Sequence record: KJ019142.1
Length of the DNA: 64,000 nt
Direction: 5' to 3' (one strand)
The position numbers and the translations under genes are program-made. Positions 13,505 through 48,090 of the stretch are shown here, one piece after another. Position 1 is the first letter of the stretch, and each line of letters opens with the position of its first letter. The notes beneath the pieces were generated by a model. That model did no database searches. It saw only the letters and a list, made by a program, of their open reading frames with translations, and was not told where the DNA came from.

Positions 13505-16294
13505 ATGGCAAGCATTCAATTCCCAGCAAATCCGAAAGTTGGTGATACTTACTACGACGTAGATACAAATATAACTTACACCTGGGAGGGTGAATACTGG
13601 TTTGCAACAGGACCAGGCACAGGTATTGGTGCCACTGGAGCAACTGGAGCACAAGGAAATCAAGGTTCTAGTGGTGAAAAGGGTGAGCCAGGAACTCGCG
13701 GAATTAAAGGAGATACTGGATCTACTGGTTCTACCGGTCCCACAGGTCCTGGTGGTTTTATTGGATTAACAGGTGCAACTGGTCCTCAAGGTTCTCCCGG
13801 TGGTGCTACCGGTGCTACAGGTAATATTGGTCCTTTAGGAACTACTGGTGCAACTGGTCCTGATGGTGCTAGTGGTGCTACAGGTATTCAGGGTCCTATT
13901 GGTACTCCAGGTGGTGCAACTGGCGCTACTGGTTTAGCTGGTCCTCCAGGAAATGTTGGTGCTACTGGTCCTCTCGGTCCTAATGGTACTCCAGGTGGTG
14001 CTACTGGTCCTCTTGGTCCTGTTGGTTCTACTGGAGCCACTGGTGCTGGTGCTACTGGCTCTGATGGTGCTACTGGTTCTACAGGTATTCAGGGACTACA
14101 AGGTTCCCCAGGTGGTGCAACTGGTGCTACTGGTATTGATGGTTTACTAGGTCCTATTGGTGCCACAGGTACTACAGGAGCTACCGGTGTTGATGGTCCT
14201 ATTGGTGCCACAGGTACTACAGGTGCCACAGGTGAGACAGGTGATACAGGTTCAACCGGTGCTGCTGGTCCTACCGGTATTCCTGGAGCCACTGGTTTCA
14301 CAGGTCCTGAAGGTGCTACGGGTTCCAAAGGTGATGAAGGTTCTACAGGTAGTACAGGTCCTCAAGGTTCTCCAGGTGGTGCCACTGGTGCTACTGGTGT
14401 TGATGGTCCTGTAGGTTCTACAGGTGCCACAGCTGCTACTGGTGCCACTGGTCCTGACGGTCCTACCGGTCCCGCAGGTCCTACAGGTTTATTAGGTGCC
14501 ACTGGTGCTACTGGTGATGATGGTTCTACTGGAGCCACTGGTGCTACTGGTTTTGGTGCTACTGGTGCCGATGGTGCTACTGGTTCTACAGGTTCTACGG
14601 GTCCTGATGGTCCTCTTGGTTCTACTGGTGCCACTGGTATTGCAGGTGGTGTGAGTCATGTATGGTCACCAGATGTTTCTATCCTAACTGCCAACAACTC
14701 TTTCCTATTCACCCATGATGTAGACGAAGATATTAAGATCCTAAAGATCTCCAAGTTTAGTTCAACATTCACCAATGAGGAGGCACTACTTAATAGTTTT
14801 GCAATCGGTGATTCACTTAGACTAACATCAGGTCCAGCAACATTCCAATATACTGTTAGAGCCAATGGTGGACTCACAGTATCATCTGGTGTTGACGTGT
14901 TTATGTTACTCGTCAGTGATGGTTTCTTAGCATCTGGTAGTGGAACACTCAATGGTTCAACAGTTGTTCTTCAACGTCCCACATCATCCACCTTCGCTAC
15001 ATTTAACTTCGGTGTATCCACTATCAACTGGCCTACTACTGATGGTGATGTAACTATTGACTATCCATTCCTAGTAAACAATGGTCCTAGGTATGTTGCA
15101 TTCAATCAGAAGGATCTACTAGGTAGGGATGATGAGCAGTTCTTCTTTGAACCTTTAGTATCTACAGACCTAAACTCATTCCAGTTCCAGGTTAAGACTA
15201 CTAACTTCTTCAAATCAGAAATTGAAGGTGGTTACTACTATAGTGATATTGATGCCTATGTGTATCTAACTGATATCACCGAACTATATTCGGATCCAAG
15301 TAATCCAGTAACCAGTGTGGGTTCACCTTGGAATGTTCAGGTTGTAGGTATTGCCTCCGCCATTCCTGGTGTTGCTGGTTCTCCAGGTGGTGCAACCGGT
15401 GCTACTGGTCCTGCAGGTCCTCCAAGTGGTGCAACTGGTGCTACAGGTGATCTTGGTCCTATTGGTCCCGGTGGTCCTACTGGTCCCGTTGGTGTTAACG
15501 GATCCCCAGGTTCACCCGGTGGTGCAACTGGTGCCACTGGTGCTGATGGTCCTGAAGGTGCTACTGGTTCTACAGGTGCAACAGGTGCATTCGTCACTGG
15601 TAGTAATCTTGTAGCTGGTATTATCACAGCCACCACATTCGATGGTGATGCTACATCATCTGATAAGATTAAGACTAATCGGTCCAGCAGTGCGGCTGTT
15701 AACTATCTAACTTTCGTTTCTGATGATAACACTGGTGGTGCCGTTAGTGAAACCCTCAAGACAAACTTGAATGTAAGTTTCATTCCTTCTTCTGGTGATT
15801 TTATCGCTAGTAGGATTACAGCAAGTAACAACTTCTACCTGGGTGGTACTGAGGTCAATTCTTCAGCATCTGAACTAAATGTGTTGGTTGGTGTTACTGA
15901 CTTCTTAGATGAAGATAATATGGCATCCGATAGTCCTACGGCTATCCCATCACAACAATCAGTTAAGAGGTATGTTGACGCTAACGCTTTCTCTGGTATT
16001 ACTACAGTTAGTATCCTAGTGGGCGCTGGTTCTAGTGATGTATACTTCGCAAGTTCTATTGTTCCAACTACTAATGAGTCCATTGACTTGGGTAGTATTG
16101 ACTATAAGTTCAGAGACCTCTACCTATCAGACACAACCATATATACTAACACTGGTGAACTTAGTGTAGGTTTGAATACCACAGCACCAACCGCAAAGGT
16201 TGTTCTTGGTCCAGCACTACAAACAATTGTTCAACAGTCCACTGATTTTGATGACTTTAAGATCAGAATCGCAGCACAAAGTTGGGGTGGTTAA
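13505..16294 (+). CDS. Collagen-like fibre protein (two G-X-Y blocks)
   Basis: Long GATGATG/GPTGP triplet tracts, about 13640-14640 and 15370-15600; cyanophage-type FPANP...YTW N-terminus. Confidence 0.85.
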
Positions 16295-32581: not shown

Positions 32582-32710
32582 ATGAACGTCCCCAACTGGC
32601 AGAAGCACTCCAAGAAAGACCAGAAGGGTCGCGGAGTGAGCAAGGGTCAGATGAGAGCCCGCAAACAGGCTCTACGTGCCCTAAAGGCAAAGCTCCTTGT
32701 GACAGTCTAG
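32582..32710 (+). CDS. Small basic early protein
   Basis: MNVPNWQKHSKKDQKGRG...; sole gene between boxes 4 and 5. Confidence 0.6.
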   Translation: MNVPNWQKHSKKDQKGRGVSKGQMRARKQALRALKAKLLVTV

Positions 32711-32757
32711 GAAGTGGCACAAGCCCCCTAGGCAAGACCCTCAAACCCTGCTATACT
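32698..32757 (+). promoter_or_regulatory. Cassette 5 (TAGGCA-17-TATACT)
   Basis: TGTGACAGTCTAGGAAGTGGCACA. Confidence 0.85.
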
Positions 32758-32780
32758 AAACACATACAAAGGAAACCACC

Positions 32781-33194
32781 ATGGCTCGTCACTCTGAAGT
32801 TCTCATCCAAGGCACCGAGGTTCCCGGTCTTCGCATGATCGTAACCGTTCCAGTCGATCACACCTGGGCATCAGAAACCGCCGAGAGCATCTATGGATTT
32901 GGTGGCAACACCCAATATATCTGGCGGAAGTCTTGGGAGACTAACCAACCCGCCCCCCGTGGTGGTGGTTCCTCCTCCTCCTCTGGCATGGGTCCTGGAG
33001 CTATCCTGATGGGGATGATTGGTCTTATCCTGGTTGCTGGTATCGGTTCCGCTTTCGAGGGTAACGACACCCCCTCAGCTCCTTCCTATGACGCTCCCGC
33101 ACCTGTTGAGAGGACATATGTTCCACAGGCACCAGCAGCAACATCCTCCTACGATAACGGTCCTTGCCTCACAGCTAACTTTGAACCTTGTTAA
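32781..33194 (+). CDS. Hypothetical membrane-anchored protein
   Basis: One TM segment (AILMGMIGLILVAGIG), AAGGA RBS after cassette 5. Confidence 0.65.
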   Translation: MARHSEVLIQGTEVPGLRMIVTVPVDHTWASETAESIYGFGGNTQYIWRKSWETNQPAPRGGGSSSSSGMGPGAILMGMIGLILVAGIGSAFEGNDTPSAPSYDAPAPVERTYVPQAPAATSSYDNGPCLTANFEPC

Positions 33195-37969: not shown

Positions 37970-38134
37970 ATGAAAAGCAACTACCTTCTTCTAATGTCTC
38001 ACTGGAAACGAGCAATGACTATGGGTAAGAAACAAGAAGCTGAAGACCTTATGTTACAAATCAAGGAGATAGTTTCTTCTGGTAATGTAACAGATAGGGA
38101 GTTGACAGCAGGTAAGTTTATTGGTTGGCGTTAA
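37970..38134 (+). CDS. Small hypothetical protein (absent from track)
   Basis: MKSNYLLLMSHWKRAMTMGKKQEAE...; ATG abuts the upstream stop. Confidence 0.5.
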   Translation: MKSNYLLLMSHWKRAMTMGKKQEAEDLMLQIKEIVSSGNVTDRELTAGKFIGWR

Positions 38135-38148
38135 GTAACATAAACTCA

Positions 38149-38295
38149 TTTTTCCATTACCAGGATGGCAGGGACTACCTACCATCCCTTTTTTATGCCG
38201 ATATGGTTTTTTACGAGTTTGGGTCTAGTGCCTGACTGGGTTCTCAGGGAGCAACAAACCCCATATCACCCCGATACCACCCCCCTACACAAAAC
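38149..38295. repeat. Second repeat family, copy A (about 147 bp)
   Basis: Gapless 73/98 identity of 38198-38295 to 47442-47539, plus equally spaced upstream blocks. Confidence 0.8.
38163..38194 (+). terminator. Probable Rho-independent terminator
   Basis: GGATGG...CCATCC-CTTTTTT (large loop). Confidence 0.5.
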
Positions 38296-38305
38296 CACAA
38301 ACCAT

Positions 38306-38365
38306 TGTGCCAGTTGGACTAGTGGCACAACCCCCCTAGGCAAGACCCCCCCTATCGTGTATTGT
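38306..38365 (+). promoter_or_regulatory. Cassette 9 (TAGGCA-17-TATTGT)
   Basis: TGTGCCAGTTGGACTAGTGGCACA. Confidence 0.85.
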
Positions 38366-38411
38366 ATAGAAGTGGAGGGGAAACCCACCACACAAACCAC
38401 TAACTAACCAA

Positions 38412-38594
38412 ATGAACCGCATCCAACTCAACAAAGAACTCACACAACTTCGCGAAGAACGTGAAAAAGCACAACGTGAAGTTGATAACATCCAAGGATG
38501 TATGAATGAGTTAATGAGGAAGCGAAATGAGTTGGATATGGAACAAGAAGAGCGTTCAGGTCAGATGTTATTCGACCAGATGTTCGGAGGTTGA
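38412..38594 (+). CDS. Small coiled-coil early protein
   Basis: Behind cassette 9; ends LFDQMFGG. Confidence 0.65.
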   Translation: MNRIQLNKELTQLREEREKAQREVDNIQGCMNELMRKRNELDMEQEERSGQMLFDQMFGG

Positions 38595-38623
38595 GTTAGT
38601 AACACAAACTATTCACTAAAACA

Positions 38624-38869
38624 ATGAACACAACAACAATCAACATTCTCAAATCACTGGACATTCTTTCCACTTTGATTCAAGCATTCTATGAGATTGG
38701 ATATGAACTTGGCACCTTCTATCGCAACCATCTCCATTCACATGTGAAGTTTGCTATTGAATACTCTGGTCTCGTTATTCGTGAGACCTATAGTAACCGC
38801 CAAGAGTATTTCACAAAACTGAATAACCTTCGCAACCAAGCTGGTTCATACTTTGTCTATAGCGTGTGA
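38624..38869 (+). CDS. Hypothetical protein
   Basis: Stop TGA supplied by box 10. Confidence 0.6.
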   Translation: MNTTTINILKSLDILSTLIQAFYEIGYELGTFYRNHLHSHVKFAIEYSGLVIRETYSNRQEYFTKLNNLRNQAGSYFVYSV

Positions 38870-38924
38870 CAGTTGAGGAAGTGGCACAAGCCCCCTAGGC
38901 AAACCCCTCCTCACCTGCTATACT
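38865..38924 (+). promoter_or_regulatory. Cassette 10 (TAGGCA-17-TATACT)
   Basis: TGTGACAGTTGAGGAAGTGGCACA. Confidence 0.85.
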
Positions 38925-38949
38925 ATATTCATACCAAAGGGAACCACCC

Positions 38950-39192
38950 ATGACTCACCTTTCTTTCACTCAAACCACACAAAACGCACTCCGTGAGTTG
39001 GATCGTTTAGAGGGAATAAAAGTTAGACTCGCTGGTCTGATTGTTGATCTTAAAGAGACACCATCAGCTAACTCTGAGACTTGGGTCAGGATGTATACTG
39101 ACCGCCTCGTTTCTAATGTTATCCCAGCCATCAAGGAAGTTAAAGAATATCTCACTAGTCAGGATGCACTAGTTACCAAAGCATCCAACTGA
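38950..39192 (+). CDS. Hypothetical early protein
   Basis: Sole gene between boxes 10 and 11. Confidence 0.65.
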   Translation: MTHLSFTQTTQNALRELDRLEGIKVRLAGLIVDLKETPSANSETWVRMYTDRLVSNVIPAIKEVKEYLTSQDALVTKASN

Positions 39193-39240
39193 CAAACTGG
39201 CACAAGGGGGGTTGGCAAGACCCCTCAAAACCCCTATACT
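39181..39240 (+). promoter_or_regulatory. Cassette 11 (TTGGCA-17-TATACT, degenerate left arm)
   Basis: GCATCCAACTGACAAACTGGCACA. Confidence 0.8.
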
Positions 39241-39269
39241 AAACACATACCAAACAAAGGGAACAACCC

Positions 39270-39521
39270 ATGGCTCAACAAATCAAAATGAGAACACGAG
39301 TTTATTCTGATGTGACAGTAAGAGATCCACAGAGATATTATGATAGTGTGTTTCAGGGTTATAATGAGTATTGGACACTATTAGAATCAGATGATCCAAA
39401 GTGTATCTTAGTTGAGACTACAGCACAATATGATCTAAACCCAGGGGGTTTGGATAACTTATATGATATGATTACACCTGAAATGTATCAGTCAACATAC
39501 AGAACCTATATTGAAGTCTAA
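39270..39521 (+). CDS. Hypothetical early protein
   Basis: Sole gene between boxes 11 and 12. Confidence 0.65.
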   Translation: MAQQIKMRTRVYSDVTVRDPQRYYDSVFQGYNEYWTLLESDDPKCILVETTAQYDLNPGGLDNLYDMITPEMYQSTYRTYIEV

Positions 39522-39523
39522 GA

Positions 39524-39582
39524 TGTGACAGTTGGGGAAGTGGCACACGCTTCCCCACAAACCACTCCATACCTGCTATACT
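39524..39582 (+). promoter_or_regulatory. Cassette 12 (CCCACA-17-TATACT)
   Basis: TGTGACAGTTGGGGAAGTGGCACA. Confidence 0.85.
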
Positions 39583-39606
39583 AAACACATACCAAAGGAA
39601 ACCAAC

Positions 39607-39804
39607 ATGGTTATCGACACTGAAAACTATTTCACCACTGACAACGATCTTCTTCAGACAGTATCACAATTCATTCTCTCACTGAATAATAAATTGATCA
39701 GTCAGAATGCGAACTTTATGGAGTCTATTGGCGTTGATACTTTGACTGACTTCAACCAACAACTCATCCTTGAATGTGAAGAATACAAGTGTTATGATGT
39801 ATAA
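39607..39804 (+). CDS. Hypothetical early protein
   Basis: AAGGA RBS after cassette 12; start revised. Confidence 0.6.
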   Translation: MVIDTENYFTTDNDLLQTVSQFILSLNNKLISQNANFMESIGVDTLTDFNQQLILECEEYKCYDV

Positions 39805-39941
39805 TGAGATTACTTATTCTCTTCTTGTTTGTTACTGGGTTTCTAGTCCTTAGATTCGGAGTTGTCCCCCATGACAACTACGTATTCGATTGTGATAATA
39901 TCCCACAAACAACAATCAACACCATCGCCTGTGGTGGTTAA
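39804..39941 (+). CDS. Small membrane protein (absent from track)
   Basis: MRLLILFLFVTGFLVLRFGVVP... Confidence 0.45.
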   Translation: MRLLILFLFVTGFLVLRFGVVPHDNYVFDCDNIPQTTINTIACGG

Positions 39942-39964
39942 CACTCAACCTCAACTATTTCACC

Positions 39965-40474
39965 ATGACTGATACCAACAAGGCTCAAACAATTGAAGAG
40001 CTGAAAGCTGAAGTTTCTGAACTGAAGGCAGCTAGGAAGGAAGAACTTCTGGCACAGGCAGAACAACGAAAGCAAGATGAGGAACTTCGTTCACTCGAAC
40101 TTCAGAAACAAGCTCTAGAAAGTGGTTCCCTCCCCTCCCCCACAGGCACACCTCAGTCACTACAACGTAGGATGACTGATATTGAAAACGCACGAGTTCG
40201 CACCTGGGCATATGCACTAGGAGCCTATTTCACTGGTCCTATCATGCCAGCTGTGGTGGCTAATCGTACTAAGAATTGGACACCTTTCTGGGCTGGATTG
40301 GGTCTTGGCATTGTATCTCTCCCCCTAGCATTTGCTGACCTTGGTATCATCTCCTCTGTCCCTGCAGCTGCTTTAGGAACTGTACTTCAGGCTCAGAAAT
40401 CTAACAAGAAGCGTGAGGAGTTGGGTATTGTTTCCCCTGAGGAAGCTGACCTTCTCCGTTTCAAACAGTTCTGA
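39965..40474 (+). CDS. Coiled-coil plus membrane-hairpin hypothetical protein
   Basis: Charged helical N-half, hydrophobic C-half. Confidence 0.65.
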   Translation: MTDTNKAQTIEELKAEVSELKAARKEELLAQAEQRKQDEELRSLELQKQALESGSLPSPTGTPQSLQRRMTDIENARVRTWAYALGAYFTGPIMPAVVANRTKNWTPFWAGLGLGIVSLPLAFADLGIISSVPAAALGTVLQAQKSNKKREELGIVSPEEADLLRFKQF

Positions 40475-40571
40475 TTAAGTTACATCTCTGACCTCCTCAG
40501 TTTATACTGACGACTAAACCAACTGAGAGCGCTGGTCCCCTCTCACAACTCACCTTATCTAACTATCTACT

Positions 40572-41108
40572 ATGGCTATTTTCTCCGAAGAGTTCACCAA
40601 CAGCATCAAGTCTAAAGTTGATTCAGTGAAGGATAAATTCACAGGTATCAACATCGGGAAACAGAGTGTTGTTGCTATTGTGGGAGGTACGTTGGTATTC
40701 TCTACCCTCGCAGTTGGTGCAGTTGGTGCTACAGTTCGTCAGGTTGTTGGTTCTAACATGGCAAAACAATGTAATGTGGCTGTTGGTAACTATGTGGAGT
40801 TGGCTGAAGTTCAGGAAACCGAACTAGTGAGGGCTAATGGATATATTCAATCGGTTCTAGAAAACCCTTGGAGCGCCCTAGTCCTTGGTGCTAGGATGTC
40901 TGAGATGGCAGACGAGATGAGTGCTCGTTGGGATGAGATTGGTGAAGCTGATGATAACTATTTGGAGGCATGTGTTCCTGATAGTGACTTCAAACAATGG
41001 GTGTTTGGTGGATATGTTGAAGCCGATCGTGAAGCTAAGTGGGAAGCAGAATCTACCCTAGAAGATACTCGCCAAATCACAATCAAACTCTCTGAACAAC
41101 TCGGATGA
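40572..41108 (+). CDS. Hypothetical membrane-anchored protein
   Basis: TM segment VVAIVGGTLVFSTLAVGAVGA. Confidence 0.65.
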   Translation: MAIFSEEFTNSIKSKVDSVKDKFTGINIGKQSVVAIVGGTLVFSTLAVGAVGATVRQVVGSNMAKQCNVAVGNYVELAEVQETELVRANGYIQSVLENPWSALVLGARMSEMADEMSARWDEIGEADDNYLEACVPDSDFKQWVFGGYVEADREAKWEAESTLEDTRQITIKLSEQLG

Positions 41109-41356
41109 ACAACCCTTTCGCCTCACTAACTACCGAAGAGTTTATCTCTCTATCTGATGCATGTGCTCTCTCTGAACAAATGTGGAGGGAGCGCTCCCGT
41201 TCTATAAAAGCAGGGGAGCCACGTTGGTTTTTAGATGGCGAACCTATGTTCACTGAGGAGGAATGTCGTTCAGAGATGAAACGATATCGTGAGTTACAGA
41301 AACGAGTTTCCTGGTTCACTCTCACACCAGAGGAGGGGGAGGGTGTGCCAGTCTAA
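41105..41356 (+). CDS. Hypothetical protein
   Basis: ATGA overlap; ends in box 13. Confidence 0.55.
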   Translation: MNNPFASLTTEEFISLSDACALSEQMWRERSRSIKAGEPRWFLDGEPMFTEEECRSEMKRYRELQKRVSWFTLTPEEGEGVPV

Positions 41357-41403
41357 GAAGTGGCACAACCCCCCTAGACAAACCCCTCTTTTTCTGCTAT
41401 ACT
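41344..41403 (+). promoter_or_regulatory. Cassette 13 (TAGACA-17-TATACT)
   Basis: TGTGCCAGTCTAAGAAGTGGCACA. Confidence 0.85.
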
Positions 41404-41425
41404 ATTCACATACAGACAAAACACT

Positions 41426-42331
41426 ATGGCTAAGAATCTCCACCTAGAACACCCAGAAGACCAGCTCCTCACTGGTGATGATAGTGTCATCAGTTGGTTC
41501 TATGCAACCTCTAGTTCCTCTGTGAAGATGGATGGGGCTCCTGCTATTGTATGGGGAACTAACCCAGAAAATGGTGAGTTCTTTGTGGGAACTAAGTCAG
41601 TGTTTAATAAGAAGAAGATCAAGATATGTTATACCCAGAAAGATATTACAACCTTATATGGTCATCAACCTAATGTGGTTGCTATCCTTACCGCCTGTTT
41701 GGCATACCTCCCCCGCACTGATGTAGTGTATCAGGGTGACTTTATTGGGTTTGGTGGTGATGATACTTACACCCCAAATACTGTCACCTATGTGTTCCCT
41801 GAGGTTGTTGAGGAACGTGTTATCATGGCACCCCATACTTTCTATGTGGGTGAGAAGATGACTGAGATGGATGCCTTCCCTATCTTATCCACTCTAGATG
41901 AATCACGTCACGTTCACTTTGTTCAACCTACCGTGGATATCTACAACAATAAGGCAAACTGGGAAGAGTTTCAGCGTTGTTATGATGAAGTGAAAGAGGT
42001 AGATGGTTTCCTAGGTATCAAGAGAGCCACAGAGGCAAAGATTATCATCAACCAGTTACTCCGTAACAACAAGTATCTTAGTATTCCACTATTGACTGAG
42101 ATCTTTGGTACCAAAGAGATGGCTATTCTCTACACCTTCGCATTACATGAGAAGTTCAGAATCCTTGAGGATGCTATCTATTACGATGGTCCTCAGTGTT
42201 TGTTAGATGGTGATGATGTAGAGTCTGAGGGTATTGTTAGAACCAACCAGTTTGGTTCTATGAAACTCGTCAATCGTTACATCTTCAGTGTAGCAAACTT
42301 CAACAACAGTAAGTTCAGAGAGGTGAAGTAA
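41426..42331 (+). CDS. Ligase/nucleotidyltransferase-like protein (KxDG motif)
   Basis: HLEHPED, SVKMDGAPAIVWG, VYQGDF, EGIV...MKLVNR resemble ligase-superfamily motifs I, III, IV and V. Confidence 0.6.
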   Translation: MAKNLHLEHPEDQLLTGDDSVISWFYATSSSSVKMDGAPAIVWGTNPENGEFFVGTKSVFNKKKIKICYTQKDITTLYGHQPNVVAILTACLAYLPRTDVVYQGDFIGFGGDDTYTPNTVTYVFPEVVEERVIMAPHTFYVGEKMTEMDAFPILSTLDESRHVHFVQPTVDIYNNKANWEEFQRCYDEVKEVDGFLGIKRATEAKIIINQLLRNNKYLSIPLLTEIFGTKEMAILYTFALHEKFRILEDAIYYDGPQCLLDGDDVESEGIVRTNQFGSMKLVNRYIFSVANFNNSKFREVK

Positions 42332-42525
42332 TGGTTGACTTCGATACTCTAACCCACGAAGAACTAGAGAGACTATCTGATGACTGTGAAGACTTTCTTC
42401 TTCATAGAAATATACCTCTAAGGTCACATTCCTATGAGAATATCATCAGACATGCTATTTTGGAAGGATACCAACTATCTCGGTATCCTGGTGTGACACC
42501 TGGGAAACTGGCACAAGACCCCTAG
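42331..42525 (+). CDS. Hypothetical protein
   Basis: Runs through box 14. Confidence 0.55.
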   Translation: MVDFDTLTHEELERLSDDCEDFLLHRNIPLRSHSYENIIRHAILEGYQLSRYPGVTPGKLAQDP

Positions 42526-42551
42526 ACAAACCAGACCACACCTGCTATACT
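42492..42551 (+). promoter_or_regulatory. Cassette 14 (TAGACA-17-TATACT)
   Basis: TGTGACACCTGGGAAACTGGCACA. Confidence 0.85.
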
Positions 42552-42575
42552 ATACTCATACCAAACAAACAACCC

Positions 42576-42833
42576 ATGCAACTCACAGCACAACACGCAA
42601 ACATCGTTGTTGATTTCTACCCTGTCAAGTACTCTGATGGTACTATCAGTGAGCGTCTAATGTATAAAACAGTGAAGTTCGTTGGTTCACCTCCATCCAA
42701 GTCATATATCAACAAAGAATCATTTGAAAAGGAAGTTGATTCCCGTGTTTATGGTTTTGGTTATGAGGTGACTGCTCTACATACAGAGCCACAACTCTTC
42801 AACTCTGCACTTGTTCAAACTCGCTGGTCATAA
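42576..42833 (+). CDS. Hypothetical early protein
   Basis: First gene after cassette 14. Confidence 0.65.
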   Translation: MQLTAQHANIVVDFYPVKYSDGTISERLMYKTVKFVGSPPSKSYINKESFEKEVDSRVYGFGYEVTALHTEPQLFNSALVQTRWS

Positions 42834-42835
42834 GT

Positions 42836-43027
42836 ATGAATTACACACAACGGTTGTATGAGGCTGAACAACTCTCCACTATGTGTTACCTCCAGGATAT
42901 TGATCTAATGGATTGTATCATGGAGGTACGTGATTATCTAGAGTTGGGTTATAATGAAAGTAAAGATATTGCCTCAGGTACATATAAAGTTCTCTCATCA
43001 ATGAATCCCAATGAGCCTATCAAATGA
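42836..43027 (+). CDS. Hypothetical protein
   Basis: Operon context. Confidence 0.5.
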   Translation: MNYTQRLYEAEQLSTMCYLQDIDLMDCIMEVRDYLELGYNESKDIASGTYKVLSSMNPNEPIK

Positions 43028-43382
43028 ATCAATGAAGAAACTTGTGGAAAACGTTGGACCTGATGTTTTCCATCTAATTGCTTCTGACCCATACTATACT
43101 GAGACCTTTATGAACCTATTACCTGGTGCAATCACTGAGGTTATTGGTGACACTTCCCCTGAACTTATTGGTGCTTTGGGTATCAGTATCATGAACAGAA
43201 TTGAGTTTGTTGGTGACGATGATGGTGGTGATAATAAAGCCGCTAAAGTATGGGAGGAGAGATATAGATCTCTGTTTCGTTATGTCAAAAACACATACGC
43301 ATCAGAGTATGTTGATGGGGCAGAATATGGTCAGATGGGTACAATGTATGGAGATTTTACTAGTACCTCGGAGTTAGACTGA
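43011..43382 (+). CDS. Hypothetical protein
   Basis: Operon context. Confidence 0.55.
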   Translation: MSLSNESMKKLVENVGPDVFHLIASDPYYTETFMNLLPGAITEVIGDTSPELIGALGISIMNRIEFVGDDDGGDNKAAKVWEERYRSLFRYVKNTYASEYVDGAEYGQMGTMYGDFTSTSELD

Positions 43383-43585
43383 TGCCATCATTTACACCCT
43401 ATGGTAGATACCAACTAACATCAGTTCAGGTAGATTTGATCCTACACTGCATGAGTGAGTATAAAGGACTCACCACACAGGAAGATAACGAGAGGAGAAA
43501 GATTGTAGAAGAACTTAGCAACTCTTTTGCTGATACTGACCCATCAGATCCTTACCTAGATCATTACTATACTTGTGACTATTGA
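43382..43585 (+). CDS. Hypothetical protein
   Basis: TGATG coupling. Confidence 0.55.
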   Translation: MPSFTPYGRYQLTSVQVDLILHCMSEYKGLTTQEDNERRKIVEELSNSFADTDPSDPYLDHYYTCDY

Positions 43586-43959
43586 TGAATGAACTCTTTC
43601 CTTTTCCTGGTTTCCAGTATAGATTAGACTATACAGATAACGGAACCCCAAAGCTATGTTGGTTTGAATGTGAGGATCATTTAGCCAAACATATATCTAG
43701 ATACAAACTAACAAAGAAAACTCACAGGGCAAAGATCCAAACCCCTCGCGGTGTGAAGTTGGCGAAAGACCCGCTAGCCACCAAACCAGCCAGGAAACGG
43801 AAAACCACCCCCTCAAAACCCAGTGATACCAAGGGTTCTAAAGTATCAAAAACTACAAAATCCATAACGAAGGGCAAGAAGGTAGAAACACCCACCCCCT
43901 CCCGTAGGAAAGCGAAGAAATCAGTTTTTAGTACCGTGGAGGACTTCTTTACCAAATGA
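43582..43959 (+). CDS. Hypothetical protein with Lys-rich tail
   Basis: FPFPGFQYRL...CWFECEDHLAKHISRYKL, then a histone-like basic tail. Confidence 0.65.
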   Translation: MMNELFPFPGFQYRLDYTDNGTPKLCWFECEDHLAKHISRYKLTKKTHRAKIQTPRGVKLAKDPLATKPARKRKTTPSKPSDTKGSKVSKTTKSITKGKKVETPTPSRRKAKKSVFSTVEDFFTK

Positions 43960-44147
43960 TTGTACCTAACGAATCAGAATTGCTTCACCTAAAGATACAA
44001 GCAGCAATGAGGGAGAATGCTTTTCCTCACAATCAGTTGATGTATCTGGGTGAGAGAGAAGATCAACACTGGTATCTAATAGCAGGAAAACATGAAGTGC
44101 CGGTAACAATGTTAGAAGGATTTGAGAGGATTGATGATGAAGAATGA
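43956..44147 (+). CDS. Hypothetical protein
   Basis: LLHLKIQAAMRE...HWYLIAG. Confidence 0.6.
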   Translation: MIVPNESELLHLKIQAAMRENAFPHNQLMYLGEREDQHWYLIAGKHEVPVTMLEGFERIDDEE

Positions 44148-44289
44148 TAAACTAAAGACATATCACCTAAAGGTAAAGTTTATGGATGAACTAACCTATG
44201 GTCAGTTTATTACAGCACCCAGTGAAGAGGAAGCCATGAGACTTTTCATTGAGGAGTATATCTACATCGCATCGGAGAGAGACACATGA
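44137..44289 (+). CDS. Small hypothetical protein (absent from track)
   Basis: MKNDKLKTYHLKVKF...ITAPSEEEAMRLF fills the gap with overlaps at both ends. Confidence 0.5.
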   Translation: MKNDKLKTYHLKVKFMDELTYGQFITAPSEEEAMRLFIEEYIYIASERDT

Positions 44290-44477
44290 ACCACAATAAG
44301 GTAGCAGAGGCTCTTCATGAAGAAGTAACTGATTATATCTTTAAGAACCATTATCGCCATATCAAATCAGTTTATACTGATGTTGTTGAGGAATACATAG
44401 AGAGGGAAGTGGGTCCTCTAACTGAGAAGAACCACAAACAACTAGTTAAACAACTCGTTAAATTCTACATCTCCTGA
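44286..44477 (+). CDS. Hypothetical protein
   Basis: ATGA overlap. Confidence 0.55.
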   Translation: MNHNKVAEALHEEVTDYIFKNHYRHIKSVYTDVVEEYIEREVGPLTEKNHKQLVKQLVKFYIS

Positions 44478-44491
44478 TTGAGCTTTTCGTT

Positions 44492-44701
44492 ATGTCTTCA
44501 CCATCAGCATTCACACCAGCATTAGGTCTAGAAGTTGAATACAGGGGCTTTGTGGGTTATATCAAGTTTATAGATGAAGAATATTTAACAGTGTGTGTGA
44601 AGAAGAAAGAGCACCAAATGTTTGGTGATGTTTGTATGGTTGTGTATCCAAGTCAGTGGGAACACATTAAACTAATGGGCGGACCTCACAGAGACCGCTA
44701 G
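44492..44701 (+). CDS. Hypothetical protein
   Basis: VEYRGFVGYIKFIDEEYLTVCV; stop in box 15. Confidence 0.6.
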   Translation: MSSPSAFTPALGLEVEYRGFVGYIKFIDEEYLTVCVKKKEHQMFGDVCMVVYPSQWEHIKLMGGPHRDR

Positions 44702-44758
44702 GACAGTTGGAGAAGTGTCACAAGGGGGGTTCGCAACCCTCCTTTTTTATGCTATACT
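44699..44758 (+). promoter_or_regulatory. Cassette 15 (TTCGCA-17-TATACT, hairpin)
   Basis: TAGGACAGTTGGAGAAGTGTCACA. Confidence 0.85.
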
Positions 44759-44785
44759 ATATTCATACCAAAGGGAACCACCCCC

Positions 44786-44932
44786 ATGACTATCAACTTC
44801 AAAAGTCTATTCATCACCACTTGTGTGGGTCTCACCCTAATACTAGGGAGCTTCGCTTTTACCAGTGATTATGGTACTGAGACCGGGCGTGGCGAACAGA
44901 CTGAGAGCCCTTACTACGGACCCGCTTTCTAA
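44786..44932 (+). CDS. Small signal-anchored protein (absent from track)
   Basis: MTINFKSLFITTCVGLTLILGSFAF...; sole gene between boxes 15 and 16. Confidence 0.6.
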   Translation: MTINFKSLFITTCVGLTLILGSFAFTSDYGTETGRGEQTESPYYGPAF

Positions 44933-44977
44933 AGTGGCACAAGGGGGGTTGGCAAGACCCTCTACACCTGCTATACT
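44918..44977 (+). promoter_or_regulatory. Cassette 16 (TTGGCA-17-TATACT, right half-site only)
   Basis: ...CTAAAGTGGCACA-AGGGGGG-TTGGCA. Confidence 0.8.
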
Positions 44978-45000
44978 AAACACATACCAAACAAGGAACC

Positions 45001-45177
45001 ATGTTCAAACTTCAACTTAAGTGGCAGAAAGAAGGTGAGTGGATTGATACAGTATACGCTCCTACAGAATACGCAACAGCTTTCTTTCGTTGGAGACAGT
45101 ACCAAGAGCTTTGGGGTGATACTCACACCTATCGCCTCCTCGATGTGACACCTCAGGAAGTGGCACAAGCCTCCTAG
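45001..45177 (+). CDS. Small early protein (absent from track)
   Basis: MFKLQLKWQKEGEWIDTVY...; AAGGA RBS; sole gene between boxes 16 and 17. Confidence 0.6.
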   Translation: MFKLQLKWQKEGEWIDTVYAPTEYATAFFRWRQYQELWGDTHTYRLLDVTPQEVAQAS

Positions 45178-45203
45178 GCAAACCACCCCACACCTGCTAT
45201 ACT
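45144..45203 (+). promoter_or_regulatory. Cassette 17 (TAGGCA-17-TATACT)
   Basis: TGTGACACCTCAGGAAGTGGCACA. Confidence 0.85.
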
Positions 45204-45226
45204 AAACACATACCAAACAAAGAACC

Positions 45227-45508
45227 ATGAATTTCAAGTCCTTCCTTCTCTCCTCTCTCATCGTTACCACTGGGCTAGTAGCTTCAGCACCAGGAGCCAA
45301 AGCCGCTGAATGTTTCAATGGTGATGGATATCGGGTTTGTATGGAGAGCTTAGGCATGAATCGTTGGGAAGTATCCTTTGAGAACAATCACGGATCAGAG
45401 TTTATGGAGGTTCAGTGTATTGGCAAGAGTGTGAGTGATTGGACCTCACGGGGTGATTTGAGTCAGTCTGAAGCACAGTATCTCGCAGAGGAATTCTGTT
45501 CCTGGTAA
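45227..45508 (+). CDS. Exported 4-Cys protein (paralog of 48473)
   Basis: Signal MNFKSFLLSSLIVTTGLVASAPGAKA; four Cys. Confidence 0.7.
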   Translation: MNFKSFLLSSLIVTTGLVASAPGAKAAECFNGDGYRVCMESLGMNRWEVSFENNHGSEFMEVQCIGKSVSDWTSRGDLSQSEAQYLAEEFCSW

Positions 45509-45541
45509 GATACACCAACTAACCAACTCTACACTATTATC

Positions 45542-45697
45542 ATGTTTGTATCCTTCACTGAAATCCAAGACTACATTCGCGAAGATCAATACACATATAG
45601 TGAGCGCCAGTTCCGCTCACGCAAGTATAAAAAGAACGAACGTCGTTACCAACGTCGCCAGAAACAACAACAAAGAGACCGCACCTACGACGTGTGA
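45542..45697 (+). CDS. Small basic protein (absent from track)
   Basis: MFVSFTEIQDYIRED...RKYKKNERRYQRRQKQ; TGA supplied by box 18. Confidence 0.55.
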   Translation: MFVSFTEIQDYIREDQYTYSERQFRSRKYKKNERRYQRRQKQQQRDRTYDV

Positions 45698-45751
45698 CAG
45701 TTGGAGAAGTGGCACACGCTTCTCCGCAAACCCCTAAGGGGGTGCTATACT
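45693..45751 (+). promoter_or_regulatory. Cassette 18 (TCCGCA-17-TATACT)
   Basis: TGTGACAGTTGGAGAAGTGGCACA. Confidence 0.85.
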
Positions 45752-45776
45752 ATATTCATACCAAAGGGAACCACCC

Positions 45777-46001
45777 ATGACCACCACCACTCCAAACCTC
45801 TACAACGAAGCTATCCGTCGTTTGGCTGACGGGTTCTCCTCAGAGTTCGCTGAGTTCTGTGCAGGAGACGAGAGGGTTCACGAGATCATGATGGAACTCG
45901 CTAGTGAGTTCGTAGAAACTAATATCCCTGTAGTGAGTGAGGACAGCCAGACTGACGTGGCATCTGAGCTCCTCATGAGTATCACAGTCACCAAGGTGTG
46001 A
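45777..46001 (+). CDS. Small acidic early protein
   Basis: Sole gene between boxes 18 and 19; TGA supplied by box 19. Confidence 0.65.
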   Translation: MTTTTPNLYNEAIRRLADGFSSEFAEFCAGDERVHEIMMELASEFVETNIPVVSEDSQTDVASELLMSITVTKV

Positions 46002-46056
46002 CAGTCTAGGAACTGGCACAAGGGGGGTTGGCAACACCCCCCAAACCCCTTATAAT
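45997..46056 (+). promoter_or_regulatory. Cassette 19 (TTGGCA-17-TATAAT)
   Basis: TGTGACAGTCTAGGAACTGGCACA. Confidence 0.85.
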
Positions 46057-46081
46057 AAACACATACCAAACAACCCAGACC

Positions 46082-46630
46082 ATGAACTTCAAGAAACTCT
46101 TCCTTTCCGCCCTCGCACTTGGTTCAGTTGTAGCCCCTTCAGCAAACGCTGGTTATACCTATGAGGGTTATCACTTGATGGATGGTTCTGACTTTCCTGG
46201 TTATGAGAGAGTGGCAACCCCAATGATTCAGGCTCTCAATGAAATGGGTGTTCCTGTTGTTGATGGTGGTAAGAATAACGTAGAAATGTGTATTCCTGAA
46301 GAGGAAAAGATGACTCTTGGTTTCTACGTTCCAGCATCCAATGTGATGGTTATCTGTACCAAGTCTATCCCAGGTTGGCTCCAGATGGAGACACTTACCC
46401 ACGAAACAGTTCATGTCATCCAAGACGCACGGGCTGGTATTGATAACGGAGATTTGGGAGAGGCACCAACCGATCACCTTATCACCCTCGCTAATGAGAT
46501 GGATCCCGATAAGATGAATATCATCTACAGCCTCTACGATGAGTCTGATTACGCAGTAGAGATTGAAGCTTTCTACTTTGAAACAGAACCCCAGGTGGTT
46601 ATGAATGAGATCCAGAAGTGGGCATTCTGA
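46082..46630 (+). CDS. Exported zincin-like metallopeptidase (HExxH)
   Basis: Signal MNFKKLFLSALALGSVVAPSANA; TLTHETVHVIQD; downstream EIEA. Confidence 0.7.
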   Translation: MNFKKLFLSALALGSVVAPSANAGYTYEGYHLMDGSDFPGYERVATPMIQALNEMGVPVVDGGKNNVEMCIPEEEKMTLGFYVPASNVMVICTKSIPGWLQMETLTHETVHVIQDARAGIDNGDLGEAPTDHLITLANEMDPDKMNIIYSLYDESDYAVEIEAFYFETEPQVVMNEIQKWAF

Positions 46631-46672
46631 TACACTAAGTAACACTCACCAAACACACTAACTAACAACATC

Positions 46673-47059
46673 ATGGGCACACGTTCACGCATCGGTTATC
46701 AACTTCCAACTGGCAATATCGTTTCTGTGTATCATCATTGGGATTCCTATCCTACGTGGTTGGGTAAGAGACTCACCAAAAACTATATCACTGATAAAAC
46801 TATCACCGAACTGATTGATGGTGGTGATATGTCATCTATCGAGAGTAATCGCGACTGGGATCTTAATGAAGTTGCCCCACATGTTCAGTATTATTCACAA
46901 CGTGGTGACACTGGATGTGAACCCCTCCTTCACAAAAACCAAAGAGAGTTTATCAAAACCACTGTAGACTGTTGGGGTGAGTATTCCTACCTATACAGGA
47001 ATGGACGTTGGTTCTGTTATGATGAGAAGGGTAAGTCTGTTTCACTGAAGAACTTATGA
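46673..47059 (+). CDS. Conserved phage hypothetical protein
   Basis: GTRSRIG...SVYHHWDSYPTWLG...LIDGGDMS...EYSYLY. Confidence 0.7.
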   Translation: MGTRSRIGYQLPTGNIVSVYHHWDSYPTWLGKRLTKNYITDKTITELIDGGDMSSIESNRDWDLNEVAPHVQYYSQRGDTGCEPLLHKNQREFIKTTVDCWGEYSYLYRNGRWFCYDEKGKSVSLKNL

Positions 47060-47391
47060 TTAGCAAACTGTTTTCACTATCTGTTGTTCTTGCGGGTTCT
47101 ATCTTACCCGCACAGGCATACCCCAATATCGTATATTGGGAACGCATTGATTGTAACCTCATCACCGAAACTATCCAGAAGTGTGATAGGTACAATGGGC
47201 AGAATGGAGTTTTCATCGAATCATACTACCTGGACATATACACAAACGAACATAGCTTTATAGATCCACGAGGACCTGAAATAGTTGTACCTGATGTAAT
47301 AGAAGAAGAGACACTAGATGATATCCAACCTGATGTAGAATACAACGAACCGATAACAACAACAGACCCACTCCTGAATGATAGTTACTGA
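47056..47391 (+). CDS. Hypothetical exported protein
   Basis: MISKLFSLSVVLAGSILPAQA signal. Confidence 0.6.
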   Translation: MISKLFSLSVVLAGSILPAQAYPNIVYWERIDCNLITETIQKCDRYNGQNGVFIESYYLDIYTNEHSFIDPRGPEIVVPDVIEEETLDDIQPDVEYNEPITTTDPLLNDSY

Positions 47392-47539
47392 TTTTTCCAT
47401 ATTCCTGTCGGCAACCACCTCCTACCATACCCCCTGCCAAACCGATATGGTTTTTTCACCTTTCCCGTCTAGTGGCTCACTGGTGTCTCAGCGAGGCACA
47501 AATGAGATTTCACCCCCATACCACCCCTCTGACCAAAAC
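47392..47539. repeat. Second repeat family, copy B
   Basis: See copy A. Confidence 0.8.
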
Positions 47540-47544
47540 GGATC

Positions 47545-47856
47545 ATGAAACGCTACGGACTTTATTGGCTGAGAGCTATCACCCTGGGAGCTGGTTTGAA
47601 CTTTGTTTTGACTGGTTACCTTATGGGTCACCAAAAGTGGAAGTTTCAACATGCAGCTCCACTCTCAGCGTTTATCTGTGTGAATCTATCGTATGTGGCG
47701 GATCGTCTTATCTTTGGTGATAAGAAGGAACCTGAAGATTTAGATCCAGATACTATTGTTATATCAACCCCACACTGTTGCCCCGTATGTTCAGAGTATC
47801 CTTGCACTTGTGACAGTTGGGAAAGTGGCACAACCCCCCTAGGCAACACCCTCTGA
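47545..47856 (+). CDS. Hypothetical membrane protein
   Basis: Two hydrophobic helices, CCPVC...PCTC; runs through box 20. Confidence 0.5.
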   Translation: MKRYGLYWLRAITLGAGLNFVLTGYLMGHQKWKFQHAAPLSAFICVNLSYVADRLIFGDKKEPEDLDPDTIVISTPHCCPVCSEYPCTCDSWESGTTPLGNTL

Positions 47857-47868
47857 ACCTGCTATACT
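47809..47868 (+). promoter_or_regulatory. Cassette 20 (TAGGCA-17-TATACT)
   Basis: TGTGACAGTTGGGAAAGTGGCACA. Confidence 0.85.
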
Positions 47869-47892
47869 AAACACATACCAAAGGAACCAACC

Positions 47893-48090
47893 ATGAAAGT
47901 CTCTCAGGAAGTTTTCAAGAGTTACATTCAGATACTGGATGAAAACACACAAACATCATGGGATATCCTAAATGTTTTGAATGATATTGTTAGAGGTGAC
48001 TGGGATAACTCAGTCCAGTATTGTTTGGAAAATCCATCAGGCGACCCTATGGATGATTTCAACTACGCAGGCAGTCGCCACCACTATTGA
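47893..48090 (+). CDS. Hypothetical early protein
   Basis: AAGGA RBS after cassette 20. Confidence 0.65.
   Translation: MKVSQEVFKSYIQILDENTQTSWDILNVLNDIVRGDWDNSVQYCLENPSGDPMDDFNYAGSRHHY

Follow-up and report, generated by a model that had tools for sequence, protein, structure and literature searches.

A duplicated intergenic element of Synechococcus phage ACG-2014f and its relatives in uncultured marine T4-like cyanophages

T4-like cyanophages are among the most abundant marine viruses, and their early transcription, replication starts and turnover of ORFans are little understood. Here we compare an intergenic element that occurs twice in a 64,000-nucleotide stretch (the window) of Synechococcus phage ACG-2014f isolate Syn7803C11 (KJ019142.1, with identical coordinates), a T4-like cyanomyovirus (Kyanoviridae, Atlauavirus), with the closest systems described in other phages. 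The put RNAs of phage HK022 are cis-acting processive antitermination RNAs, present as two diverged copies per genome of ~60-70 nt, each with two adjacent stem-loops just past the transcription start and ahead of terminator arrays. Promoter-early stem-loops (PeSLs) are mobile regulatory cassettes of T4-type phages (Arbiol et al. 2010, PMC2839356; Comeau et al. 2014, PMC4122927). The T4 origins oriF (uvsY) and oriG (34), among several per genome, are ~100 bp long, consist of a promoter and a downstream A+T-rich DNA unwinding element (DUE), and are controlled by UvsW (Kreuzer and Brister 2010, PMC3016281). Cyanomyoviruses use sigma70-like early and NATAAATA late promoters, lack MotA and Asi, make at least one antisense RNA, and have a single predicted origin reported, in Syn9 (PMC2984593). 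An antisense RNA of this kind is CfrI of S-PM2 (Millard et al. 2010, as cited in PMC2984593), a non-coding T4-like cyanophage transcript tied to a homing-endonuclease gene.

We consider it most likely that the two copies of the element, A and B, mark the border between adjoining transcription units within the early, hyperplastic part of T4-like cyanophage genomes. Each copy may be a composite terminator/restart cassette, analogous to a PeSL and acting both as a + strand RNA and as a recombination junction, a reading to which we assign a probability of roughly 0.4. Like PeSLs, the element combines an intergenic terminator-type stem-loop with promoter-like hexamers and A/T tracts, and lies between small ORFans of a hyperplastic region as conserved sequence with differing flanking genes; where one phage has a gene between two copies, a relative has one copy alone (contigs L026 and L037, described below). 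Unlike PeSLs, which are ~50-100 nt long, the element spans ~190 nt, is present twice per genome beside ~26 ordinary box-type promoter cassettes, has an extra conserved part (GACTGGGTTCTCAG, N25, GATACC and a CA tail), and occurs in either orientation relative to genes; in this phage neither copy has a recognisable sigma70-like promoter, and copy A does not end in a Shine-Dalgarno sequence and ATG. PeSLs are recognised by many copies per genome and by similarity to the phage's own early-promoter cassettes, and the element has neither. Because of these two departures and the long extra conserved part, we view it as a variant that may work like a PeSL without being a member of that class. If it is a true boundary cassette, the PeSL concept would reach cyanophages with a second, structurally richer class.

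Two copies and a family of relatives

Both copies, 9.2 kb apart, lie in spacers that KJ019142.1 annotates as intergenic, and the genes around them are small, unannotated, of early type and all on the + strand (CDS, coding sequence):

38135-38411: gap holding copy A, between CDS _58 (ends 38134) and CDS _59
47392-47544: gap holding copy B, between CDS _86 (stop 47391) and CDS _87 (ATG 47545)

An earlier reading of the letters alone (the first-pass annotation) had proposed a duplicated non-coding element at these sites, and the duplication is borne out. The segments 38198-38295 and 47442-47539 form an ungapped alignment with 73/98 identities, against a mean of 25.2 (standard deviation 4.6, maximum 61) for 200,000 random 98-nt pairs drawn from the window. 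The conserved blocks CCGATATGGTTTTTT, GTCTAGTG.CT.ACTGG..TCTCAG.GAG and TCACCCC.ATACCACCCC match the window only at copies A and B, where shuffled sequences lead one to expect ~0-0.2 matches. The upstream motif TTTTTCCAT-N20-CCTACCAT that had also been described was found in both copies, at 38149-38157/38178-38185 in A and 47392-47400/47421-47428 in B, with GGCA at offset 18 in each; upstream and downstream parts are offset between the copies by a 1-nt indel. A covariance model run on the window returned exactly two copies, at 60 and 56 bits, the next match scoring 10.9 bits.

By sequence similarity, copies A and B belong to a family of ~190-base intergenic cassettes of marine T4-like cyanophages, previously undescribed. 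Using relaxed patterns on IMG/VR and JGI metagenomes and a covariance model, we recovered at least 60 distinct relatives, all in contigs of uncultured T4-like cyanophages. The homologues that the first-pass annotation had suggested seeking elsewhere thus exist, and what could have been a mere local two-copy duplication is instead a family spread across many uncultured cyanomyoviruses. The pattern CTAGTG-N4-ACTGG-N2-TCTCAG identified 17 further IMG/VR loci, all with the same core and extended similarity; other relatives came from the patterns GACTGGGTTCTCAG and ACTGG-N2-TCTCAG-N26-ATACC, and all 20 of the 20 matches to a 19-position pattern in JGI metagenomes proved to be family members. Relatives score 48-84 bits with a 68-position covariance model. 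A model built without any ACG sequences and run on the window gave its best score to copy A (25 bits, E 3.5e-4), followed by copy B (11.9 bits).

Read in the orientation of the window, the family layout starts with a T- or A-run, GATTTCATTG-like and GGATGACC-like blocks and CTACCTG, continues with TAGAAT or TGAAAT, TGCAG, an A6 or T6 run and GTTTT, and ends with a hairpin termed P1 (variable in its 5' arm, with a 7-nt loop before CTGGGTTC), TCAG and a variable hairpin region. With respect to the neighbouring genes, relatives are found in both orientations. Those parallel to their genes, a class that includes both window copies, have [GC]ATACC exactly 25 nt past TCTCAG and then a CA-rich tail; this spacing holds in every parallel-oriented relative, in line with the fixed-spacing conserved blocks noticed in the first-pass annotation. 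A terminator usually lies upstream of the parallel elements and a box-type promoter usually ~25 nt downstream. Elements of this class precede at least 13 unrelated gene families, which rules out a gene-specific leader or riboswitch and points to a generic role. Elements antiparallel to their genes mostly start within ~10 nt of the stop codon of a UvsW-like helicase gene. Paired copies kilobases apart recur among the relatives (L035, inverted, 8.8 kb; L027/L039, 6.6 kb; L055, 7.6 kb). With its 14-mer and fixed spacings, the element provides a compact cross-lineage marker that can be searched for in metagenomes, and it is accessible in the culturable pair of ACG-2014f and Synechococcus WH7803.

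The relatives encode a helicase (ResIII and Helicase_C domains; one isolate has it annotated as UvsW) that shares ~60% identity with the helicases of S-SCSM1, S-T4, S-SKS1 and Bellamy, and the element is absent beside the helicase gene of all these phages. Nor does it occur in 24 kb of S-CAM7, which among cultured relatives with a homologue of CDS _87 is the nearest, and blastn of one relative against the phage collection gave no match. Relatives are absent from bacterial genomes, and a host-derived element was rejected, one core 18-mer having only ~10 chance matches in 185,579 bacterial genomes, none of them cyanobacterial. In most uncultured relatives two small conserved proteins flank the antiparallel copies (MKEGFIIGK..., 58 aa, and MKYEVQLYVGG..., 47 aa; L035 2005-2181, L027 2211-2351 and homologues). 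Both lack Pfam matches as well as homologues in the window, and they were set aside as candidates for a co-occurring binding protein. A separate match lies in an unrelated phage (L014 13040-13427, IMG/VR 3300031853_004370), where 27/29 nt equal the C-rich block of copy B (TCACCCCCATACCACCCCTCT.ACCAA) and are flanked by a terminator and a dense iteron-like repeat array (GTTGATAAC, GGTTTTCAAC); it has no other family feature, and we treated it as a chance or very distant match.

It is very improbable that the copies are what is left of a duplicated protein-coding gene, or that they represent a small open reading frame (ORF) missed in annotation. The frame from 38198 and 47442 is free of stops in both copies, its translations agree at 18/32 residues, and copy A contains an 80-aa ORF at 38165-38407. 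Against this, the third codon position shows no excess among the 25 differences between the copies (10/9/6 on positions 1/2/3), and copy B, whose frame enters the annotated membrane-protein gene _87 out of phase, lacks an ATG upstream of 47502. Further, no annotated gene occupies this site in any of the 45 deposited ACG-2014f genomes, the 14-mer is invariant at all three codon positions, and the + strand of the element is antisense to the genes in most relatives. The codon-position spread and the missing start codon of copy B largely refute a coding remnant: the bias expected of paralogous coding sequences, an alternative already entertained in the first-pass annotation, is not seen, and its description of the element as non-coding stands despite the shared open frame.

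The element is likewise not a degenerate 24-bp box promoter. A nhmmer profile made from 25 early-promoter cassettes finds 26 cassettes between 27 and 53 kb of the window and gives no match to either core even at E 100, as would follow from the earlier statement that box and element are unrelated. The box cassettes (85-90 nt, window 27200-53000; for example 32693-32783, 38860-38950 and 47804-47894) consist of a palindrome TGTGNCA-N10-TGNCACA, a -35 (TTGGCA/TAGGCA), a -10 TATACT and a conserved 5' leader CATACCAAA, and often bear a G/C hairpin with the -35 in its loop. These ~26 cassettes, identical with the '24-bp box', are themselves a PeSL-like system. The Rfam scan that had been recommended matched no family: Rfam 15 at the gathering score gave nothing in the window or in 7 relatives, matches at E up to 10 were at chance level only, and scans for tRNA and tmRNA found none.

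Parts of the element and their fold

The features of each copy are as follows.

Copy A
38149-38157, + strand: T-rich left edge TTTTTCCAT, just past the CDS _58 stop (38134); homologous to the ACTGATTTTTC / CACTTTTTTTGA block of relatives
38163-38195, + strand: terminator-like hairpin GGATGG.AGG...CCT.CCATCC and T6 (38190-38195), from the minimum-free-energy fold
38198-38212, + strand: CCGATATGG and a second T6 run, common to copy B and the ATATGG subfamily of relatives
38221-38243, + strand: hairpin P1, with arm GGGTCTAG (38221-38228), 7-nt loop (38229-38235) and arm CTGGGTTC (38236-38243)
38231-38248, + strand: CCTGA/TCAGG stem, overlapping P1 and alternative to it
38234-38247, + strand: near-invariant family core GACTGGGTTCTCAG, from pattern searches and family alignment
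38273-38300, + strand: GATACC, exactly 25 nt after TCTCAG as in the spacing of relatives, then a C/A-rich tail
38304-38389, + strand: ordinary 24-bp box early promoter cassette (nhmmer 46.9 bits), downstream of copy A and outside the element

Copy B
47392-47456, + strand: left half, a long irregular hairpin in the fold, then T6 (47451-47456)
47465-47491, + strand: P1 (4 inner pairs only) and core CACTGGTGTCTCAG (47478-47491)
47486-47507, + strand: hairpin P2, TCTCA (47486-47490) with TGAGA (47503-47507), absent from copy A
47517-47544, + strand: CATACC, 25 nt after TCTCAG, then a C/A-rich tail reaching the CDS _87 ATG (47545)

The left half looks like an intrinsic terminator, as predicted from its stem-loops, which are of a form fit for termination or attenuation. 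The hairpin of copy A (dG -14 to -16 kcal/mol) abuts its T-run, which begins 0-1 nt later, and was missed by a simple terminator scan because of its bulges and loop size. That of copy B begins at the CDS _86 stop (47391) and pairs CCATAT (47397-47402) with ATATGG (47445-47450) on the outside and GGCA (47410-47413) with TGCC (47435-47438) on the inside; it is weaker here (~-4 kcal/mol) and reaches -17.5 kcal/mol in the metagenomic variant L191. The A/T run is oriented to give a U-tract in the sense RNA in 58/65 distinct members, a count whose weight is limited by kinship among them, and canonical terminators were detected at the corresponding place in L035 and L203. In the antiparallel-class spacers the scan finds a sense-strand terminator and a sole sigma70-like promoter, ATGACC-16-TAGAAT, which lies on the + strand of the element and is aimed into the core. 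The TTTTTCCAT...CCTACCAT segment, counted with the element in the first-pass annotation, is better described as a terminator-type hairpin with its T-run than as part of a structured core.

Pairing in the right half is better on the + strand. P1 is 79% paired in the family as opposed to 21-56% for slid controls, and for its five inner pairs the paired share is 93% on the + strand versus 69% on the - strand, in both orientation classes. P1 varies only by C<->U changes facing a G-rich 3' arm that is itself invariant, which leaves no two-sided covariation; the invariance of this arm, like that of the core GACTGGGTTCTCAG, is partly forced by our search patterns. A short covarying CCTGA/TCAGG stem had been proposed earlier. 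Its C-G/G-C exchange between the copies is real, but copy B breaks the neighbouring pair (C.C). Over 45 relatives the stem is 73% paired with its middle pair broken in 27/45, its six two-sided cells all fall at one pair, and one control slid by 2 columns does equally well. P1 fits better, and we do not regard the stem as established. The TGAGA of P2 lies 12-13 nt past TCTCAG in 23/27 parallel-class sequences other than copy A, and the flanking pair that would extend it is G.U, A-U or U-A among copy-B variants, with exceptions (13/25 paired). A general third hairpin, P3, around GATACC was rejected, as it occurs in few relatives only (L065, L167, L196). RNAalifold applied to the family returned a trivial 4-bp hairpin and nothing more.

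Variation among isolates and exchange of gene modules

We compared eleven ACG-2014f variants and five metagenomic contigs. The least variable part of the element is ATATGG...TCTCAG (12-18% variable columns), in which the CCGATATGG block varies at TATGG[T/A] only, and the sequences on either side of the conserved part have been swapped as blocks among isolates. The left half of copy A exists in at least 4 forms, 3 of which keep a hairpin directly before the T-run with differing stems (GGATGG/CCATCC, GGGGATGG/CCGTCCC and GGGAGG.CAGG/CCTG.CTCCC; -14 to -17 kcal/mol). A hairpin retained through different stem sequences is what characterises an intrinsic terminator. Downstream of copy A, the gene at 38412-38594 encodes a 60-aa coiled-coil protein, MNRIQLNKE..., in this isolate and an unrelated 60-63-aa acidic protein, MTE..FSVHYSSDEHD..., in isolates US37 and US52 (L015/L018).

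Isolate C8 (Syn7803C8, L016 995-1600) has an HNH endonuclease cassette in place of the left half of copy A (window 38135-38197). Its HNH gene (155 aa) has its own hairpin and extended -10 promoter TGnTATAAT (TGTGTTATAAT), and beyond the cassette a B-type left half joins an A-type core at CCGATATGG, which identifies the C8 copy as an A/B chimera. In L026 (3541-4072, IMG/VR 3300025653_000020) two direct copies 0.46 kb apart flank an HNH gene of zinc-finger type (105 aa), unlike that of C8; in the relative L037 the HNH gene is missing and a single copy is present. Small variable ORFs of the hyperplastic region surround the element, with indels and replacements whose breakpoints lie in the cassette. 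The element is located exactly at exchange sites of gene modules and homing-endonuclease genes, and a role as recombination junction has support. The first-pass annotation had offered a structured non-coding RNA or a multi-site protein-binding platform, the latter as an origin or recombination site; it is the recombination-junction aspect of this proposal that gains support here.

The same comparison bears on the downstream genes. The order of element, ~25 nt and box seen at copy A recurs in L189, L198, L203, L156, L200 and in copy B of isolate US37. Copy B of the present isolate has no box promoter between CATACC and the CDS _87 ATG: a box promoter and a 357-nt gene that follow CATACC in many isolates (e.g. 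L015 10760-11250) are missing here at 47522/47523, and CDS _87 is therefore without a promoter of its own in this isolate.

Transcription and the weighing of functional readings

The expression data consist of assembler contigs from a few environmental runs, of very low depth, and show presence only. Of the contigs in a poly(A) metatranscriptome, one extends from the upstream gene as far as 38225, and another, over CDS _59, opens just ahead of that gene with CTAAACACATACC, which corresponds to the 5' region of a promoter of the box type. The CDS _59 contig at window 38407 starts CTAAACACATACCAAACAACC, right past the box-type -10 of a variant genome, which is consistent with the boxes being active promoters. 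At this depth the contig ends are compatible with transcripts that end near the T-runs and begin at box promoters. The whole region is covered in a further run, for which it is uncertain whether RNA or DNA was sequenced. We also noted, in run X5, a contig (37829-38249) whose left end repeats its right end in reverse complement (27 nt of core, GGGGTTTGTTGCCCCTGAGAACCCAGG), which is either a fold-back artefact of library or assembly or a variant with an inverted core copy ~400 nt upstream.

In the composite cassette that we favour, the hairpin and U-tract of the left half would end or attenuate the transcript from the upstream gene. The right half would be transcribed by read-through or from a weak internal start, at which most relatives have ATGACC-16-TAGAAT, and would fold as one or two adjacent 5' hairpins around GACUGGGUUCUCAG, followed by GAUACC and a CA-rich tail that would lead to the next promoter or gene. 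Copy B, where nothing else stands between the terminator and the CDS _87 ATG, supports the idea of restart. As conserved sequence amid non-conserved flanks, the element would double as a homologous junction at which gene modules, HNH endonuclease genes included, are inserted, deleted or swapped. What the comparison shows directly is the family with its blocks and spacing, the terminator-type hairpins, the + strand pairing bias, the variable flanking genes and the breakpoints at the edges of the element; termination, transcription restart, action of the hairpins as RNA and recognition of the invariant 14-mer are inferred.

Several observations weigh against this account. It leaves unexplained the near-invariance of the 14-mer, though the phage helicases are only ~60% identical, and the presence of just two copies per genome where ~26 ordinary promoter cassettes already serve as boundaries. 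The promoter opposes the gene direction in most relatives, an arrangement not expected of a simple boundary cassette. In the window copies the scan yields no sigma70-like promoter (38100-38420 scanned); the best candidate, CTACCA-17/18-TATGGT, has 7/12 matches, and its -10-like TATGGT is TATGGA in many isolates. No contig of the poly(A) metatranscriptome spans 38226-38305, at the depth stated above. Single-sequence folds on both strands are no better than those of shuffles, no helix has convincing two-sided covariation, and P1, the CCTGA/TCAGG stem and P2 overlap and compete. The near-invariant 14-mer, the two-copy limit and the antiparallel relatives together keep alive models in which the element is an origin, a small or antisense RNA, or a DNA site.

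An R-loop origin like T4 oriF and oriG would have a host-type promoter firing into an A/T tract, with the annealed RNA priming the leading strand and the conserved hairpins on the displaced + strand helping to load the replisome. The family would then be the first recognisable type of replication origin in T4-like cyanophages, occurring twice per genome and switched off by UvsW; taken as a whole we consider this decidedly unlikely. In relatives ATGACC-16-TAGAAT is followed immediately by the A6/T6 and GTTTT tracts, orientation is independent of the surrounding genes, and two copies per segment recur (this phage, L035, L027/L039, L055). The pairing is specific to the non-template (+) strand, the strand exposed in the T4 origins, and G.T pairs are possible in single-stranded DNA too; the largest element class directly adjoins a UvsW-type helicase gene. 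Cyanophages, however, have no MotA-type promoter, the window copies have no recognisable promoter at all, and the A/T tract is short (~20 bp), with A+T little above that of the genome. GC skew does not change at copy A or copy B, in itself an uninformative result, and the element is missing from the searched regions of several cultured relatives, S-CAM7 (24 kb) among them. T4 DUEs are sequence-independent, whereas the best-conserved part here is the G+C-rich and sequence-specific 14-mer. A cis-acting RNA like put may alternatively let polymerase read through the downstream array of hairpin-containing early promoter cassettes, the box cassettes being the counterpart of the terminator arrays of HK022. 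We know of no sequence similarity between HK022 put and the element, and most relatives point against their genes, where antitermination makes no sense. If the element were a true origin or antitermination RNA, a long-standing gap would be filled.

An autonomous small RNA gene, with its own promoter and a structured 5' part, could stand in either orientation: its product would oppose the 3' end of the preceding gene as an antisense RNA in most relatives and form a sense leader in this phage, with CUGGGUUCUCAG as seed or protein motif. A + strand promoter and the + strand pairing bias in both orientation classes fit this model, as does a 14-mer kept regardless of context. CfrI provides a cyanomyovirus precedent, with an antisense arrangement such as we predict for the antiparallel class (PMC2984593); its locus is psbA, the window copies are by contrast sense-oriented, and a sequence relation was neither seen nor tested. 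Against a small RNA gene, there is no + strand terminator after the core in copy A or most relatives, no promoter by scan in the window copies, no RNA contig over the core at very low depth, no Rfam match and no complementary target identified, so that we think it rather unlikely. Unlikely, too, is a double-stranded DNA site for a sequence-specific protein, be it a regulator of the box promoters, a recombinase, or an HNH endonuclease for which the element is a recognition or homing site. Such a site would account for the near-invariant 14-mer, the inverted repeat TCTCA-N13-TGAGA with its almost fixed spacing, and the ~25 nt to the downstream box, fixed in many relatives. Two unrelated HNH genes adjoin copies, and parallel-class elements, lying between terminator and promoter, could be untranscribed. 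Yet the P1 palindrome is degraded on the duplex and the - strand in most members and is kept by + strand wobble pairs, no candidate binding protein co-occurs, and most loci have no HNH genes.

Among the genes between copies A and B, one at 39965-40474 (169 aa) is annotated 'two-component sensor histidine kinase'. The same label appears in all ACG-2014f records and is an annotation only; the gene is absent from isolate C16. Elsewhere in the window, at 13600-15600 and 6700-6950, we observed long 9-nt-periodic GGT/GCT-rich repeat arrays, which encode collagen-like Gly-X-Y stretches, probably of fibre or structural proteins.

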